From assembly GCA_907165135.1 (NCBI GenBank), contig OU015566.1, positions 10,106,001-10,170,000 of the forward strand: a stretch of 64,000 nucleotides of DNA, written 5' to 3'. The position numbers and the translations under genes were made by a program. The DNA comes from Oikopleura dioica (lineage: Eukaryota; Animalia; Chordata). Under the pieces are notes generated by a model. The model was given only the letters and a program-made list of their open reading frames with translations, was not told the origin of the DNA and searched no databases. Positions 2,802-42,313 of the stretch are shown piece by piece (positions within the stretch are counted from its first letter, which is position 1; each line of letters opens with the position of its first letter).

Positions 2802-5226
2802 TTATTTTACAATCTAAAGCAAAGTTAGTTCGCTGTTTGAAATTGAAGAAGTGTTACCTTTTGGGCAGTACCGATATTGGTACTATTGACTTTCTGGGCG
2901 AAGCGCAGCGTGTTGAACGACTCGTTCGCGAACAACTTGCGCGGGTTGACGTGCATGATCATCAACGTCTTTGAGTTGCCACCAAGCGAGTTCTGGAGCA
3001 AGTGAGTGAGCTAAAAAGGAATTGAATAAGTCTAAGGGTAATCGTCTTTGCAATACCTTGGAGTTTCTGTACGGAACGTGCTTGCTCTTGCTGCCCAGTG
3101 CAGCAATGCAATCACCAAGCGACGAGAGAGAACCGTTGATTTTCTTCGCTTCTTCAAATCGCTGTCCGGTGGCTCCTGATTCTTTGACGCGCTCAGAACC
3201 TGCCAGGTCGACGAGATTCAGGCAGGACTCCACTTTCATTCCGTTGCGGGTGTTTTCGCCAGAGACGTAAAGAATGAAGACTGAAGCAATGATTGAAAAG
3301 TCGTTTCCGATAAGATTTTTGATTACCGGAGTGAGATCGCGATGAACGCTCGTTACAGTTGGTGGAGGCAGTTTTTCGTCGCTTATTCGCTCGCTTGACG
3401 AGGTTGGAGAGCTGATGCTTGGAAGTTATTTCGTGGCGGCTCAAGTTGGCAACGTTGATGTGCTTTGAACCTGTTCCCTCGATCTTGAGCTTCTTGTCTC
3501 CACCTAGAGACGAAATAGGACTCAATCAAGGAAATGAACACTCACCTTCAAGAAGATCATTGAGCTCTTCGCAGTAAACTTCCAAATAAGAAGCTTCAAG
3601 CTTGTAGATCCAGCCTTTTTCTTTCGATTTCTCGACAGCGTCAATGAGAAATTCGAAAGATCTCGGGATGATGCCCTGCATTTCCTCGTTCTCGTAGACA
3701 TCTTCCGGCCCTTCCATTGAGAAAGTTTTGCCAGATCCTGTTTGTCCATACGCAAAAATGGTGACATTGTATCCGTCAAGAGAGCTTCTTACGAGCTGGC
3801 TCACTAAAATAAATAAATTTCTTGAAATTTGAGAAAGAAAATACCTTCGCCGAAAATCTGCATCTGCGTCGAGCCAGGCTGGAAGACGGCATCGAACTCA
3901 AACTCTGCCTTTTCGCCTTTTTTGTCTTCTCGGGTAATTTCAATACCCTTGTCGAGCGCGTTTTCGAAGCTGATATGATCAGCGGTGTGGTTCTCCTGGA
4001 TTTCTTTCGGAAGAAGAGGTCGCACACGGACGAAGACTCGGATATTTCCCTGAAGAAAATTTAGAAAAGAAAAAGAAGACTGTATTTTACCTTGAGTTGC
4101 TGAATAGTTTCGTGCAGCATTCGGCGCTCATCGTCCATCGAGTCCATTTTTTCTCTCATTTCGGATTTGTCTTGGAGCAAGCCTTCTTTCTCGTTCTCAA
4201 GCTTCTTGAGATCATCTTCCTGGAGCTCTACTTTTCGCTTGAGCTGGTCAATCTTCTTCCCAGCTCCCTCATAATCTTCCTGGAGTGAGTCACGCTCGAG
4301 TTTCACTGATTTCAATCGCTTTTGCGTTTCATCAAGTGTATCTTGTGTGCTGTCCAGGTCGTTCTTCAACTTTCGAAGCTCTCGTTGGGCACTGAAAAGA
4401 TTGATTAACTACGGTAGATAATTTAAAGACTTACTTTTGTAGGCGCTCCTCTAAATTGTCATATTCAGCTTCCTTCATCATCTTGTACTCTTCAAGACCC
4501 TTGGCGTGAGTCTGAGCCTGTTGCTTTTCGCCTTTGATGCTCTCGACGGCCTCTGTGAGCATTTTTAGATGCTGCTCTGTCTGCCTTGCTGAGGTGATCT
4601 TCTCTGCGAGGACGATCTCGAGGACGTTGCATCGCTCCTTCAAGTCGAACTTTTTGACTCCTTTGACGATGATTTTTCCTTCAGAAGTCAGTTTGACTCG
4701 ACTATAGATACAATTAACGCGACGTAATCACCAATAAGCATTACCTTGAAGGGCCAGCATCTTCATCTTCCTCAGGGACTTTCTCAACAGGAGCTTTTGT
4801 CGCCTTGACTGGTCCTCTTGCAGTTCCAGCGCGCGCTCCGACTCTAGAAGACGTAGCCGCGGTGAGGGTTTTTGTCCTCAGCGTGCTCGCTTCTCGCTTT
4901 AGCCCTGGTCTCGTTGTAGCAGCTGCTGTTCCGACTGTCCGTTTCACAGCAGCCGTTGCGCCTCTGCCGGGCATCTGCGATCGTCTCTTCGCCTTCGCCA
5001 ACGACTTTCGCGCCGAGAATGTTTTCGATGTTTTCGTTGGGCGCATGTAAGATGGCGGCGCGGCAGGAGTTTTGACGGTTTTCTTTGGAACAGAGGGAAC
5101 ATTCTCCTTGTCTGTCTCCAAAGGGCGCTTGCTAGCCGCGGTAGGTTTCTGCTCGTTTGCCTTCGACGACGATCGCAAGTTCCCGCTCGTGGGAAGCTTG
5201 CTTTTGAAGCCAAATCTATCGCTCAT
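2802..5226 (-). CDS. KIFC1: Kinesin-14 (C-terminal motor, KIFC1/Ncd/Kar3 type)
   Basis: Basic N-terminal tail, coiled coil, then a motor domain with [27 protein letters not shown] and LVDLAGSER. All introns are GT-AG; last exon IVK-stop at 2813-2802. Confidence 0.93.
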
Positions 5227-5511: not shown

Positions 5512-6246
5512 TTACGTAATTTTCAGAATTTCGTTGACCGTTCCTGGAAGGTCTCTAATCGCTCTATACAAGTTTATGTATCCATCTTCTCTAGGGCCAA
5601 AGAGCTCTAGTTCTTGGGACAGAACATAAACAGGAAAGGCAACCATCGAGCTTGTTTCGTTTCGAAGCGCATTTTCAACCATTTCACTGTCGAATCTGTA
5701 CAAAGAAGATTCCTTCGTCTTTTCTGTTGCCCAGAGAATCAAGTCCTTATCTTCAAAGCCTTCCCAAAGAGCGTCAATTTGCTTCGGAACTCGTCGAGCA
5801 AGATCACCAAGAAGAGCTAAAAAGGGAGTAAGAAAAAATTTGGAGAAGTTAGCTACCGATGTTTTCGAAGATGCTCGACATCGAGTTTCGTTCATCACCA
5901 AGTTTTGATGTGTCGAAGTCTTTTGCAGTGAATTCCGATAGATTCGACTTTTCAAGAATTTCTTTGCTGCCGGAAATCTTCGAGGTGATGCTGTTGAATG
6001 CGAGTTCTACCAATCGGGAGCTCTCCTTTGACCTGGCCCAAACTTCCACAGCTCTAAAAATTATGATAATAATTCTTTTGATCATTTTTTCGAATAAACT
6101 TACTGCCTATGCTCTTTTCTCTTCACTCCATATCCAATAAAATACTCTTTCATTCCTTTGAATGAATCATCGACATTTTCTTGACTAGAATTTTCCTCTG
6201 CAGAAATTTGACTAGCGAGAATAAGCAAGGGTGCCCAGATTTTCAT
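5512..6246 (-). CDS. Hypothetical secreted protein; 3' end uncertain
   Basis: ATG at 6246 gives a signal-peptide-like MKIWAPLLILASQISA. Two short GT-AG introns join it in frame to ORFs 5849-6085 and 5512-5955. No recognised domain. Confidence 0.55.
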
Positions 6247-35256: not shown

Positions 35257-38200
35257 ATGGGCTGGAAAAGTATAGCCTTATGGCTACATTTAGCGAACAG
35301 TTGGACCTTGACGACCGAGAAAATCAGCGAAAACGAACTCTACGACCAGTAAGTTGATGAATTGGGAGGGGATGAGTCGGTTAGATTTACGATTAATCGG
35401 AAATACGGTTTGATTCCTCGCGACATATAAAATGATAGTTACTTAGAATCCTGTTTCCGGGCCCGCCTTCCTTTCCGGGGGAAATAGTTATAGAAAAACA
35501 GATGATCGATAAAATACGAATCGATCAGTGGTCCGTCAGCTTTCGGGGTAGGGCTCCTCACACCCGAGCATAGTTTTTGATGTGCGATTTTGTCACCCCG
35601 ACCCCCTGCCATGTGCGGATGGATTTGCGGCTTTCTGAAGGTGATTTGGGCGGCGTTTTGGTGACGATTCTGATTGAAAATTTTGACCGAGACATTTTTC
35701 GGGGAGGAAACTCGAGCTTGATCGAAAAGTAGCTAGGTCAAGCGTGGCGAATTCAGTTCCAACCGGTTGCCCGCCTAGACCGAAGCAAGTTGAAAGTCAG
35801 CCATCCGGAACGACCTTCCAAGTGTTCGCTCTTTTCGTGATAGCGATCTTTAATCGCGCCCAATTATTTCAAAAAAGTATTAGCTACAGTGAATTCCTTT
35901 GTTGAGAGCTTTAATAGGGCTATCATTAGTTCCATTATATACTCGATGTCATTAGTTATTTATTGAAAAATATGTGATGTCGGAAAACGAAACGCGTAGG
36001 AAAAAAAGTTTGCTTGAAATCCCGGACAGGAAATAAACAAAATCGACACTTCAAAGTACCCAAATATGTTGTTTACCGGGCGGCACTTCAACCCCAAAGT
36101 GGTTTGCCTTTCCTTTTTCCTAAATCATGGTTGCCGCGTTTTGCAATTCTAAATGCAATACAGCTTCATAACATCGCTTTTAGGGACTCTGGCGAATACA
36201 TAAAAATCTTCTCGTCGAAAGGTGCTGATCAATACAAAATTTCTGGAGTCGATTCTGGACCGTTCTATGTCGAATCAAGGAGAGATGAAACTTTGTGCAG
36301 TGACAATGTCTGCGGAATCCTGTGGCTCAAACGAGGAATCAGGCTTGATAGAGAAGAGAAAGACTCGTATAAAGTTACATGTGAGTTAATTACGAGTTTA
36401 TTGCTGTCTTTAGCGCTATAATTTGCTCCTGCAGGAGTTATTGCAAGACTTGATTTTTGCTTTTTTCAAGTTTGAAAAAGGCAGGATTCTCGTCGCCTGT
36501 AAAATGATAAGCGTTTTTCTATTGCCCCTCACGCTTTTGATGAATAAAAATCAATCGCCAAGCAAGCGATAACGCTTCAATTTAGTGACGGCATTAGACA
36601 GAAACGGCAACCAGGTAGAAGAGGACACCCTTACTATCGAAGTTCTTGATGAAAACGACAACGCTCCAATCTTTACCGCTGCATCTTCCAAACTTCAATG
36701 CGATGAAAGCACTCGAACTGGCGGCAGCTGTGGAAAAGTCGAAGCAATCGATGCTGACGCTGGAAACGCTGGCGAAGTCGAATACAGACTTCTGCCCAAC
36801 CAGGAGACATGGAAAAGACGAGGCGGCGATCTGGAGACCAAGAGCATGGGAATCTTCAACATCAACAGTGAAACTGGTGAGATCACGCTGAACAATCCCG
36901 GCCCTTCTTATTGGGACGCTGAATCGTACGAATTCGTCGAGATCGAAGTAACTGCTCAGGAATGGCTCACAAATTGGCAACTTTGATCGATCGTTTGTGT
37001 TTTATATATCGTGACAAATTTAATGTAATCGGAGCGTGGCCATCGCCGCCCGTGGAACCCTTCATCCCCTTAATTTTGGATCTGAGATCGATGACACGAT
37101 CTTATTTCCCAAGCTCTCTAAGCTGGGACAGTAGGCATATTTTTAAGGCCGAGCTTAGACAGCTGTCCATGTCTTGTAATCCCCTACGCGGCCTGTTGTC
37201 CATTCTCACCTATGATTTGAAACTTCAGTTTAGTCATTACACTTAGTGAGCCAAATTAGGATGCACCTGGTAAATCAGCGCGAAATCCTCCAGTCACCGA
37301 AAAGATCACAATCTACATCAAAGACGTCAACGATAACCCTCCTCGAATCGTTGACTATGAAAAGGTCATCAAAGTCGGCGAGCTGAAACCAGTCGGTTCG
37401 GCGATTGGAACCGAAAATTTCGGCGGCAAGTACTCTTTCCGAGCTACTGATGCGGTAAGATATACAAGCAGTCGAATTTCAGGCTAACATAGAATTAAGG
37501 ATGTCGACCCAGAAAACAACCGTGTTACCTTCCGGCTCAAGTCTGAATCTAGCCCCTTTGAGATTGTGAACAAAGATGATAACACAGCCTTTCTCCAAAT
37601 CGCGAAACCTGGTCTCGACTTCGAAACCCAGAAGCAATGGAACATCGAGGTCGTCGCTGAGAACAAAGATGCTGCTGATCGTGGCAAAGATGCCAACTTT
37701 GCTATCACGATTGATGTTTTGGATGAAAACGAGCCCCCAATTTGGGACGATACTAACATCATCTTCAAAGAAGGAGACACGAACGGAGCCAAATCGCTGC
37801 GAGACAACCCACGAGCGAAGGATTTAGACTTTGGTGGAAAATCTCCTGTTACTTATCGAATCACCAAGGACCCTCTTGGATTCTTCGATGTTGATCGCAA
37901 CTCTGGCACTCTTACATATGTCCACGTTAGTTCAAAATAAAAGGGTCAGGTATAATACTTTGCTTCAGGCTGCTCCACTAGATCGAGAATGTGAATCGCC
38001 AGCTTGCAACTACAGGAATGGAACCTACGCTCTCGAGCTCGAAGCCTGCGATGATGAGAACCTCTGTGCCAAGAAAACCCACTACATCTTCATCGAAGAC
38101 ATCAACGACGAGGGACCACGAATCGAATACAACGAACCCGTCTGCAACATCCTCGATTCTGGCTCCTATGTCGTTATCAAGGGCTCCACCGACGTAAGTC

Positions 38201-40764
38201 TAACTACAGTATTAACGGAAACAAGATCGCACTACTTGAGTAGTTACGATCGCGTCCAGTTTTATATTTCATCCAAGTTTGTTTTTATCTGGAAATCTGA
38301 CTAGTAAATAGACCAATTTAAACCTTATGAAAACTCAAATTCTGCTTTTAGCTGAAAGCTATCGACCGTGATGACTGCAAAAAGGACCACTGTGGTCCTT
38401 TCAATATCAAAATCGTTGGCCAGTATAGCAAGAAGTTCGACTTGTACAAAAAGGACGATGACACTTATCAACTTCGGTAGGACACGTTCAGTGGTTTTCG
38501 TATACTAAATGTTGTTAACAGATACATTCCGCAAAAGTCCCTCCCTGTGGGAGAAACGATGCACATCCAAGTAAGCGGCACCGACCACGAAGGAAACAAG
38601 CAAGACTCCGTCATCACTCTCAACGTCTGCAGGTGAGCCTTTATACAAATTGGGTTAATCCCTACTGGACAGGGGTGGACTTTCATTTATTTTTGTTCGG
38701 CCATGCATAAATTTCTCCCGCCAGGGCCGTGGTGGTGGCGGTGTAGTAAGGGGGAAAGATCACCGAAGCGTGACTCAACGGGCGGTAATCTGCGGTCTTA
38801 TTCACCACCACATGATGAGGCTTGTTTCGGAAATAGCACCCTTCGAAATGCGATTTAGATAGTTTTTTCTACCAACAAATAATTGAATTTTGCTCTTTCC
38901 ATTGATTTAATTTCCGATAGCGTGTTAATTTTGGCAAGTGGCAATGCTTTCTTTCTGAATATCGCCACCCCATCGCGCTCAATAATTCATTTTATCACTG
39001 GGACTCGCTGAAACTTGCCAATTAGGATTATAGCTTGAGGAAATCAGGCCTAGAAGCTTATCCGGATAGACGCTTGACGAAAGCAACAGGGTGTAAAATC
39101 GGTGAAATTTGAGCCCGCCTAAATTTAGAAAGCTAATCTTATTCCCGTTGATTCCTTGACACATCTCTCCCTGCTGTTCTCAGGGGAGCTGACTGAGCTG
39201 GATCGCACCGATATCGGAGCTAATCTTTAGATCTGTCAACCTGTCGGGGGCATATGGCTCTTCTTGTCGATAGAAACCAACGTCTCTCCAAAAAATTCCA
39301 CATGTTTTCCGTATCAATTTTTAACCAGCTCAATGTCGATAAATTCCATGGTTCATTATTACTAGTCACGGTTGAATATTTTCTGTAAGGATTTTAATAA
39401 CAATTAGACTCACAAGCTCTGACAGGGCTGTTTTCAATTCGCCACAAAAGGGCAACCCGCTGTGTTAGACAAATGAATCCCTGACAGTGATCCCATCGAG
39501 TTTATCTTGTCTTGGTGCGGAAAGGGGTTATAATAAATTAAAATATTTCACCCCAATTTCTTTCAACAAAGGCGGAATGCCTCCCTTTTACCAAATCCGG
39601 ATGAGAGCTCAAAGGCGTTTTCTCACGGGCGCATAATTTGGGTGGCTTCGAGGAATGTCTATAGCTTTTCCTCTAAAAAATGTTGAACGTTCTAATAAAC
39701 TACCGTAGTTGTCAAAAATCGAGTGACTCGCCAACCGTGGCTTGCCCTGTCGTTGCGACGTCGGGCTTTCCATGGTGGTGGTTCTTTGTTATGGCCGCGC
39801 TTCTTATCATTTTGGGTAAAAACCAGTTTTGCTTTTTGCATTTTAGTTCCTTTACTAACCCTCTCAATCGAGTGCTTGCTGTGATTCACTAACTAACCCT
39901 AATCCTAGATGCAAATCTGCTTTCGACGAAGCTGATTGTGGCTTTGACGAGGCCATCGCTGCAGGAGGAGGCGTTGTCGGCCCCTTCTTGGCCATTGTTA
40001 TGGCAGTTATCGTCATTACCTGTGAGTGTAATTACTAAAATCTCTTAGCTCTTCACTAAACAAAGGCTTTGCATGATTTATTCTTTTACTTTGAAACCAG
40101 TTCTCCTTGTTAATTTTAATTTTAGCAATCGTCGTTTTGCTCATCTTCATCAAAATGAGACGACAGCCTGAAAAGGCTGATGCTCTTATCGATGACGTCG
40201 ATGATGAACGTGCCAACATCATGGCTTACCACCACGAAGGTGGTGGAGAAGAGGACCAGGTAAAGATTAATTACTTTAACTTTACTTTGTTTCGCGACTT
40301 TTCATCTCTAACATCAAAAATTAGACCGATTACGATCCTGAATCCCTCGTTCGCGCCAAGCACCAGAAGAACTCGTTAATGAAGACTCGTCCCGTCAAAC
40401 CCAGCCTCCTCGGCCCTGGAATTCCTCCAGAAGACATTGGTCAATACATCAACGCGGTTAGTTGGCCCCTTGACCCGCATATATTTGACACATGTTTTAG
40501 GCAAAGGGTCAAGCAGATGAAGATCCAAGTTCACCTCCATATGACTCGCTGCTCACCTTTGACTACGAAGGAGGCAACTCCATCTGTGGCGATTTATCCG
40601 AAATTGCTTCGAATGCTTCTGATTACGACGATGTAAGATAGAATCATCAAAACTGATTCTAACTTTATTTTTAGGACATGAACCTGGACAACTGGAGCTC
40701 GCCGAAATTCCGCAAATTGGCAGATCTTTACGCCGGCCGTGAAAATGATGCCTACGATGGATGA
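35257..40764 (+). CDS. Classical cadherin (five EC repeats, TM, catenin-binding tail) with two alternative TM exons
   Basis: Ca-binding motifs LDRE, DENDNAP, DVNDNPP, DENEPP and DINDEGP. Cytoplasmic [11 protein letters not shown] (p120 site), [13 protein letters not shown] and [10 protein letters not shown] (beta-catenin site). Confidence 0.93.
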
Positions 40765-41413
40765 ATACCCTATCCGCCCAAAAACCTAATTAAATGAATA
40801 TAAAGCTGAACCGGTCGAATACCTGATTACCAGTGTGCCTTCAAAATCGTCAAAAACAACGACCGCAACAATCCAACAACCACAATGCGCCAGAAACAAA
40901 CAAAAACGTTTCATTGTGATTGCATAATCTATTATATTGTGAATAGCCAGTCGTTACCTTTCATTGTTCAAAAACTTCTACCCCACAATATCGTACCCCC
41001 ACTCGAACCAACCAAAAGCTCCTTCTGAATTCCGATCCACAAAATCTGCTTTCCTCATGCTCAGAAAACGAGCGAAATGAGGCCTTTCAAATAACAAAAT
41101 TCTGCTTTCCGTATTTTTTCAATTACCAATAATACTTCTGCTATTTGATGCATCATTTTGCATCCAAAATGGTGCCAAAATATTTTTCCTTACTACGCTG
41201 AGTTCAAGCCACCTGATATTTTGTAAGCTTTACTTGCTTGAAGGTAGATTTTTATTGAATATATTGACGAGCAAGTCGAGTTTTATTTTTAGAAATAATT
41301 CTCTGTACAAAGCATTAAAGTCCTTTATTTCTGCGAATTTCGCATAAACAGTCTTTCAAAAAATTGAATAAACAGCATAAAGAAAACATTGACGTCGTAT
41401 TTTATTCGTTTGC

Positions 41414-42313
41414 TTATCGCGCCATTCGTCGGCCAATAACTGCTCCAGCGAGAGCATTATCGTTTCTAGCACCGATAGCTGCACCCAGAAGAGCACCACG
41501 GTTAGATCTCTGAGCTTCGGCGGCTTCAAGCTCAGCTTGACTTGGCCCTGTTTGGACGATGACTGTTTTGGGTTAACGAAAATTCACGAAAAATATAATT
41601 TCACTTGCTTTTATTTTAACCCTTTCCTATGTCGCCAGCTTGCTGAGGAGGTGCAGGCTGTGGTGGAGGAACTTGTTGGTAAGTCTGCTGGTAACCTGGG
41701 TGTGGTGGGTAGCCAGGATAAGGTTGGGCAGGAGGTTGTTGATATCCAGGATGAGGAGGATAGCCTGGCTGAGCTGGTGGATAACCTGGGTAGCCAGGTT
41801 GGTGAGGAGGATAACCTGGTTGCTGAGGAGGATAGCCAGCATGCTGAGGTGGGTAGGGTGCTGGAGCAGCCTGTGGAGGAGTCTGTTGCTGAATAACTGG
41901 AGCACAGACTATCACGTTGGGCTCCGCAGGTGGAGCAGATGCAACTTCAGCTTCTTGAGCTTCAATTTGTGAGGCTTCGAGGGCCTTTCTAGTGTCCTCT
42001 TCGAATTGGCGATCGGCTTCTTCCTGGGCCTTTCGCCGTTCTTCTTGCTCTTAGAATTTTGTGAGTTGAAGTTTCAAAATAATAGAAAACCTTGAGCCTC
42101 CTTTTCCTCTTGTTCCTTTCTTGCTTGTTCCTCGGCCTCCTTCTGAGCTTGTTCTTCTGCTTCTTTCTGAGCCTGCTCTTCGGCTTCAGCTTTCTCCTGC
42201 TCTTCACGAGCAGCCTCGTCTTTCGCAGCTTTCTTTTTCTCTTTCTTGTCTTTTCGTTTATCAAAAACAGCCTTGGCGGCACCACCAACAGCTAATGCAC
42301 CGAGAAGACCCAT
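41414..42313 (-). CDS. Orphan protein: charged AQKEAEEQ repeats, GYP-rich Pro repeats and a Gly-zipper-like C-terminus
   Basis: Three exons joined by GT-AG introns in one frame, from MGLLGALAVGG to GALLGAAIGARNDNALAGAVIGRRMAR-stop. Confidence 0.7.

Follow-up and report, generated by a model that had tools for sequence, protein, structure and literature searches.

The transmembrane (TM) segment of cadherins is usually regarded as a passive anchor. Vertebrate classical cadherins, which carry a prodomain and Trp2, have a single TM exon, to our knowledge and in the literature that we searched. In Drosophila CadN, the tandem alternative exons ME-18a and ME-18b, conserved for ~290 million years, encode the membrane-proximal and TM region, and the resulting TM isoforms are reported to show graded homophilic adhesion (PMC2655722). 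Here we describe a comparable pair of exons in a cadherin gene of the larvacean Oikopleura dioica, located on the plus strand of a stretch of 64,000 nucleotides (nt) from contig OU015566.1; this stretch is called the window, and positions refer to it unless another contig is named. With a probability of about 0.8, we read exon A (39709-39815) and exon B (39909-40021) as mutually exclusive anchor exons of a larvacean classical cadherin with five extracellular cadherin (EC) repeats, such that each mRNA would contain one of the two.

What can be discerned from the arrangement of the two exons? The last exon of EC5 (38522-38632) ends with LNVC plus AG in phase 2 (CTGCAG, followed by the donor GTGAGC), and the next constitutive exon opens with CA at 40126. 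Between them lie a long intron of 1076 nt (38633-39708), exon A with 107 nt (acceptor CCGTAG, donor GTAAAA), an intron of 93 nt with two CTAAC branch-point-like motifs (39816-39908), and exon B with 113 nt (acceptor CCTAG, donor GTGAGT). A and B both have phase 2 at the start and phase 1 at the end. On translation, either of them alone gives an open frame into the exon at 40126-40259, whereas A and B together run into a stop within that exon, and skipping of both leads to a stop after 15 codons. Whichever of them is used completes the membrane-proximal CxC..C motif with its last two Cys and encodes the outer half of the TM helix; the remaining, inner half is constitutive. The first-pass annotation of this DNA had already placed exon A, exon B, the end of EC5 and the start at 40126 exactly, with matching peptides, and its proposal that each cassette alone restores the frame while both together shift it is borne out by translation; one small correction concerns the exon starting at 40126, whose end lies at 40259 and not at 40260. 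Frame and splice dinucleotides are not significant by themselves, because 24 open AG..GT cassettes (60-200 nt, length 2 mod 3) occur in the interval 38640-40120. Among these cassettes, however, only the A and B families start with a Cys and end with a hydrophobic half-helix, the Kyte-Doolittle value over the last 12 residues being 2.8-3.1 for the A and B families and at most 0.8 for all others.

The pair is found in the same place in other larvaceans. Homologous contigs were collected by an exhaustive protein search with a 150-residue EC exon and by a word-index search with the exon after B; protein searches with these two exons returned genomic reading frames alone, with no full-length annotated protein and no spliced isoform among them. 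Our four-taxon comparisons comprise the window, a sister lineage with 71% nt identity to it (L009, NCBI GCA_977009715.1), and two species from marine metagenomes, X (L002, also L003 and L004) and Y (L005), in both of which the EC region is ~50% identical to that of the window at the amino acid level. A near relative on a Logan contig (L010, 94% nt identity to the window) has exon B and part of exon A, and its protein is identical to that of the window in both exons, for A within the part present; along with L010, the contigs L011 and L012 carry further orthologues of B. In all four taxa, A comes first and B second, with the EC5 exon on one side and the same downstream exon on the other: in L009, A is at 3895-4001 (107 nt) and B at 4085-4197 (113 nt), in species X at 5608-5717 and 6719-6828 of L002 (110 nt each), and in species Y at 3382-3491 (110 nt) and 4311-4417 (107 nt) of L005. 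Canonical AG/GT sites flank every copy in these taxa, and every length equals 2 mod 3, so that all length changes are in frame, and the premature stops that follow from joining A to B or from skipping both are present in 4/4 taxa. In every taxon, moreover, A begins one base ahead of a Cys codon, just as B does, so that joining EC5 to either exon recreates the CxC motif. One further contig was set aside. This contig, L008 (JGI Ga0209092_10032804, 1-1715), the sole locus that a separate search for related loci found with the exon after B, is uninformative on A and B, because its match begins only at window position 40195 (74% nt identity) and the sequence upstream is unrelated; it is either a chimeric assembly or a contig bearing a rearrangement.

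The manner in which the exons diverge argues for their use as coding sequence. Between the window and L009, exon A is 70% and exon B 81% identical at the nt level, both without gaps, compared with 77-79% in the constitutive neighbours (77% in the EC5 exon) and 48-49%, an unalignable level, in the two short flanking introns; in the A-B intron, which is ~49% identical, the block preceding the B acceptor is the exception. The ratio of nonsynonymous to synonymous substitution rates (dN/dS) is 0.12 for exon A and 0.20 for exon B between the window and L009, and 0.17 and 0.25, respectively, between species X and Y; for the constitutive neighbours it is 0.10 (EC5 exon) and 0.06 (exon 40126-40259) between the window and L009. 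The substitutions in exon A between these two fall on the three codon positions as 10/2/20, and the excess of synonymous changes yields binomial probabilities of P = 3e-4 for A and P = 2e-3 for B. Judged by this pattern, purifying selection acts on the coding sequence of A as well as of B in no fewer than four larvacean lineages. As an unused exon would not show such a pattern of substitutions, exon A is presumably read in its frame. Thus, conservation at the codon level in other larvaceans, which the first-pass annotation had named as a way to check the pair, is found for both exons: both are intact, with dN/dS well below 1.

Exon B is in use in RNA. Searches of sequencing runs uncovered marine metatranscriptomes holding sequence near-identical to the window; one contig from them, X2, takes in exon B and the 45 nt of the A-B intron that precede it, with zero mismatches, and contains the junction 40021>40126, and another RNA contig contains the junction 40632>40675. 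The three raw RNA runs that carry the species label stem from a divergent lineage, whose reads are 90-99% alike and fit only partially. In short partial matches, three of these reads link the EC5 exon to exon B, and ten fall on exon B and agree with L009 in P>S and V>I changes. Finally, the JGI contig L012, found by a protein search around EC4-EC5 of species X, carries the protein P0156 and comprises a 5' untranslated region, a signal peptide, five EC repeats and EC5 joined directly to a B-type exon. Two introns of the genomic contig from its sister species Y are missing in L012, which retains the intron after B; assuming that L012 is complementary DNA, it demonstrates the use of B in a fifth larvacean.

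For exon A the record is thinner, and several points weigh against the proposed pair. Six reads of the divergent lineage fall on exon A, with a synonymous GGC>GGT change at 39766, and match over only ~20-60 nt; as they are no more numerous than the seven reads of the same lineage on a conserved block of the long intron, they possibly represent unspliced RNA. A junction of EC5 with A, or of A with the next exon, is present in none of the reads or contigs among the RNA data examined, so that inspection of the RNA junctions, likewise suggested in the first-pass annotation, bears out the isoform with B (40021>40126 and the EC5-B links) and yields none for A. A protein search with the reading frame of exon A gave no candidate. 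The 24-mer spanning A and the next exon is missing from JGI metagenome contigs, a weak absence, since the B junction was not run as a control. Furthermore, the functional difference that we would expect between the two anchors, as it is reported for the TM isoforms of Drosophila N-cadherin, is read from sequence alone. Use of exon A is what we infer from the purifying selection on it and from the few reads of the divergent lineage.

Do these data allow for a different explanation? The alternative that survives best, and that we still consider improbable, is that A and B are both used, though not always singly in an mRNA, and that the inclusion or the skipping of both constitutes a regulated unproductive outcome, serving either dosage control by nonsense-mediated decay or the production of a secreted ectodomain that ends soon after LNVC. 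Such a mode of regulation would account for the early stops that both outcomes give in every taxon, and it could draw on the partly spliced intermediates, X2 keeping the A-B intron with B joined downstream and L012 keeping the intron after B. However, the out-of-frame tails are not conserved across taxa, neither an A+B junction nor a skip junction occurs in the RNA data examined, and the retained introns would equally fit slow splicing.

Very hard to reconcile with the comparative data is the notion that exon A is an intronic relic, a TM-exon duplicate in decay or without any use at all, with B alone being incorporated. The finding of RNA junctions for B only, together with the blank protein and metagenome searches for A, is what such a relic would predict, and so are the poor polypyrimidine tract of the A acceptor and the lack of a +5G in the A donor in the window. 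Yet a relic would hardly have stayed open in its frame, flanked by AG and GT and 2 mod 3 in length, across four taxa with ectodomains only ~50% identical, nor would its single length change be expected to be in frame, its dN/dS to lie at 0.12-0.17 with a strong third-position bias, or its FPWW motif and two Cys to be invariant next to short introns that have become unalignable. Just as implausible is a separate transcript in which exon A follows an internal promoter within the long intron and gives an N-terminally truncated cadherin without ectodomain, to which the conserved non-coding blocks and poly(A) RNA reads within that intron could point, but which is at odds with the start of A one base before the Cys codon in all taxa, fit for recreating CxC with EC5, with the failure to find a conserved ATG and signal-peptide exon in the intron, and with the lack of 3-base periodicity in the blocks.

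In a mutually exclusive pair, one gene would give rise to two proteins with the same ectodomain and tail, differing only at the outer membrane leaflet, and some cells or stages would splice exon A to EC5. The two isoforms have ~749 and ~751 residues, with the first exon excluded. Both alternatives give a C-x(8-10)-C linker and a hydrophobic half helix, but the resulting anchors look different. In the window, exon A encodes a C-x10-C linker followed by FPWWW and the outer TM half, and all four A copies have the two Cys, the motif V-A-[ST]-[ST]-x-FPWW(W/L) and then a run of large aliphatic residues. In exon B of the window, a C-x8-C linker and a Gly run lead into a TM half whose positions i, i+4, i+8 and i+12 are occupied by small residues; the two Cys, a Gly-rich turn and the i+4 ladder of small residues recur in 6/6 B copies (window, L009, L011, X, Y and Y2), the ladder being made of G-G-A-A in the window and L009, G-A-A-A in X and Y, and S-A-A-A in Y2. 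Thus, an aromatic FPWWW belt, with no face of small residues, marks the anchor of isoform A, and a Gly run followed by a ladder of the GxxxGxxxAxxxA type that of isoform B. The anchors would be expected to differ in lateral helix packing, and with it in cis clustering or partner choice, or in their positioning in the membrane, and thereby to tune adhesion; the first-pass annotation had suggested that they may differ in sorting or lateral dimerisation. A BLASTP comparison of A with B gives no alignment; the two share the positions of the Cys, the motif ..VMA.. and an identity of 10 nt (39786-39795 and 39995-40004). The pair is likely to have arisen by an old tandem duplication, as far as these traces allow to judge.

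How could the choice between the exons be made? Steric hindrance was considered as a mechanism of exclusivity and rejected, because the A-B intron, with 93 nt, is twice as long as usual here, and has 819-1001 nt in species X and Y. Most introns of the gene have 42-45 nt, while the one before exon A has 1076 nt. The A/B choice would be a regulated one, as is supported by the differing donors, which are conserved for each exon in every taxon (GTAAA(A/T) for A, GTGAGT for B), and by deeply conserved non-coding elements in this long intron. Blocks of 32-54 nt at 38779-38814, 38953-38997, 39079-39110 and 39209-39261 are at least 91% identical to L009 and show no 3-base periodicity, and species X and Y also have common blocks in the intron before A. 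The best block contains, in 4/4 taxa, the 10-mer AACCTGTCGG (39238-39247 in the window), which lies 470-477 nt upstream of exon A in three of the four; two further 8-mers are common to the homologous introns, in the same order. Poly(A) RNA reads of the divergent lineage cover 39028-39579. The conserved elements may be sites for the splice choice, an enhancer or a small RNA. A hairpin at 38733-38812 on the minus strand (-29.5 kcal/mol, z = -3.9), one arm of which is the block 38779-38814 and the other arm of which is poorly conserved, could be such an intronic small RNA; an Rfam search of 35500-41500 found no family.

Further features of the intronic sequence deserve mention. The palindrome ATCCGGAT occurs twice, at 39060-39067 and 39595-39602, 535 nt apart and both times in blocks identical to L009; the copies could form an 11-bp stem looping out the middle of the intron, or be sites of a dimeric DNA-binding factor. 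Species X (L002, 5718-5739) and species Y (L005, 3492-3513) agree in each of the 21 bases that open the intron behind exon A, GTAAATTGATTTTATTGTGAA, while exon A itself is 78% identical between them; by its conservation, GTAAATTGATTTTATTGTGAA is a candidate intronic splicing element. An involvement of RNA pairing between docking and selector sequences found no support: conserved complementary runs were not above a fair null and not separable from the conservation of the blocks, and duplexes of the conserved motif were no better than shuffled ones. Two inverted repeats, I1 between the intron and exon A and I2 between the intron and the B donor, were rejected, with chance expectations of E ~0.1-0.4 and no counterpart in L009, and a PGPWWW-like stretch at 38727 was rejected as a third cassette, since it is not conserved in L009 either.

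Taken to its full extent, the scenario could be that of a conserved binary adhesion switch in larvaceans, in which the AACCTGTCGG element binds a tissue-specific factor that chooses A or B, the ladder of B drives cis-dimerisation or clustering, and the Trp belt of A prevents it. We regard this version as speculative and rather doubtful. If it were true, cells with an identical ectodomain would differ in the strength of their junctions or sort apart, and arthropod N-cadherin would have come to this solution on its own.

Several properties make this system accessible, which should be of relevance to specialists in both cadherins and splicing. As the change is confined to ~36 residues, isoform swaps and dimerisation assays are straightforward, and the conserved blocks of the long intron offer a rare handle on splice choice in a genome otherwise largely stripped of intronic sequence. 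The genome of Oikopleura is tiny, its cell lineage is fixed, and DNA interference as well as RNA interference are usable in it. A cadherin, which may be the one described here or another, is needed for early cell adhesion in Oikopleura (PMC5345011).

The gene itself is a chordate-type classical cadherin with five EC repeats and a binding site for catenin. Its model was obtained by a tblastn search of the window with P0156, followed by a search for splice sites that keep the frame open, and consists of 12 resolved coding exons from 36185 to 40764. The constitutive exons for EC1-EC5 upstream of the last EC5 exon, which are supported by tblastn with P0156, the splice search and Pfam Cadherin matches, are located at 36185-36380, 36586-36959, 37260-37454, 37500-37925, 37969-38193 and 38352-38476. 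The exon after B (40126-40259) encodes the inner TM half, a KMRR stop-transfer motif and the juxtamembrane region ending with EGGGEEDQ, and the cytoplasmic exons for the catenin-binding tail follow at 40325-40456, 40501-40632 and 40675-40764, with the stop codon at 40762-40764. PF01049 scores 44.8 bits on 40501-40632 (cutoff 24) and has a partial match on the last exon. Pfam Cadherin matches four stretches of P0156, which aligns collinearly over its ectodomain with the solved five-EC structures of E-, N- and C-cadherin; the gene model of the window is in turn collinear with P0156, and the five EC repeats run straight into the TM segment without an EGF or LamG module. Together with the conservation in four taxa, the PF01049 match and this collinearity support the classification that the first-pass annotation had proposed, namely a classical cadherin with two frame-exclusive cassettes for the Cys linker and part of the TM segment. 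In L012, the signal peptide directly precedes EC1 (ILPVTVDEN..), with neither a prodomain nor a Trp at position 2; this lowers the case for the label 'type I/II', but does not affect that of a classical, catenin-binding cadherin.

At the 5' end, some details stand apart. The first ~58 residues of L012 (region 112-200 of the contig) fail to align to solved EC1 structures. In the window, a signal-peptide-like frame near 36066-36137 (within 36066-36184) is a candidate first exon, but does not share the reading frame of the first clear EC1 exon, and joining the two would require, as the sole option, a GT..AG intron of 26 nt. The intron 36960-37259 must have GA..AG ends to maintain the homology to P0156 (..VTAQ/DAPGK..), and no GT donor preserving both frame and homology was found for it. 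This non-canonical intron, the tiny introns elsewhere in the gene and the origin of homologous contigs from marine plankton are in keeping with a larvacean. The upstream neighbour at 29000-32300, on the same strand, is a MAGUK/DLG-like gene with PDZ, SH3 and guanylate-kinase-like frames in its translations.

How, then, does the larvacean cadherin relate to known systems? With vertebrate E-, N- and C-cadherin (PDB 3q2v, 3q2w, 1q55), it has in common the five-EC ectodomain, the Cys of the CxC..C motif, a single TM segment, the GGGEED motif and the PF01049 tail; unlike them, the larvacean transcript L012 has no prodomain and no Trp2. The first-pass annotation had compared the exon pair with Drosophila Dscam1 and CadN, naming no such case among chordate classical cadherins, and our literature search likewise turned up no publication on alternative TM exons, be it from a chordate classical cadherin or from Oikopleura. 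Of its two comparisons, that with Dscam1 is the looser one: both genes have tandem alternative exons of which one is chosen, and a long upstream intron with conserved non-coding sequence, but there are only two variants here, their frame incompatibility already enforces exclusivity, and the docking and selector pairing of RNA is unsupported. The comparison with CadN is apt (PMC2655722), as both are beta-catenin-binding cadherins with a tandem, long-conserved pair of alternative TM-region exons. Their architectures differ, however. CadN is a non-chordate type with 16 EC repeats and EGF/LamG modules, compared with five EC repeats in the larvacean cadherin; the ME-18 exons, with 68-70 residues, encode the whole TM segment, and the larvacean exons, with 35-38 residues, only the outer half of the helix; and CadN has two more pairs (7a/b and 13a/b), whereas none is seen in the larvacean gene. 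As the gene structures are not homologous, the two pairs presumably have independent origins. The design had hitherto been described only for insect and arthropod N-cadherin, and the most fitting view of the larvacean pair is that of an independent instance of this solution. That arthropods and a chordate lineage would independently keep alternative TM exons argues that the TM helix of cadherins tunes adhesion, through lateral packing, clustering or positioning.

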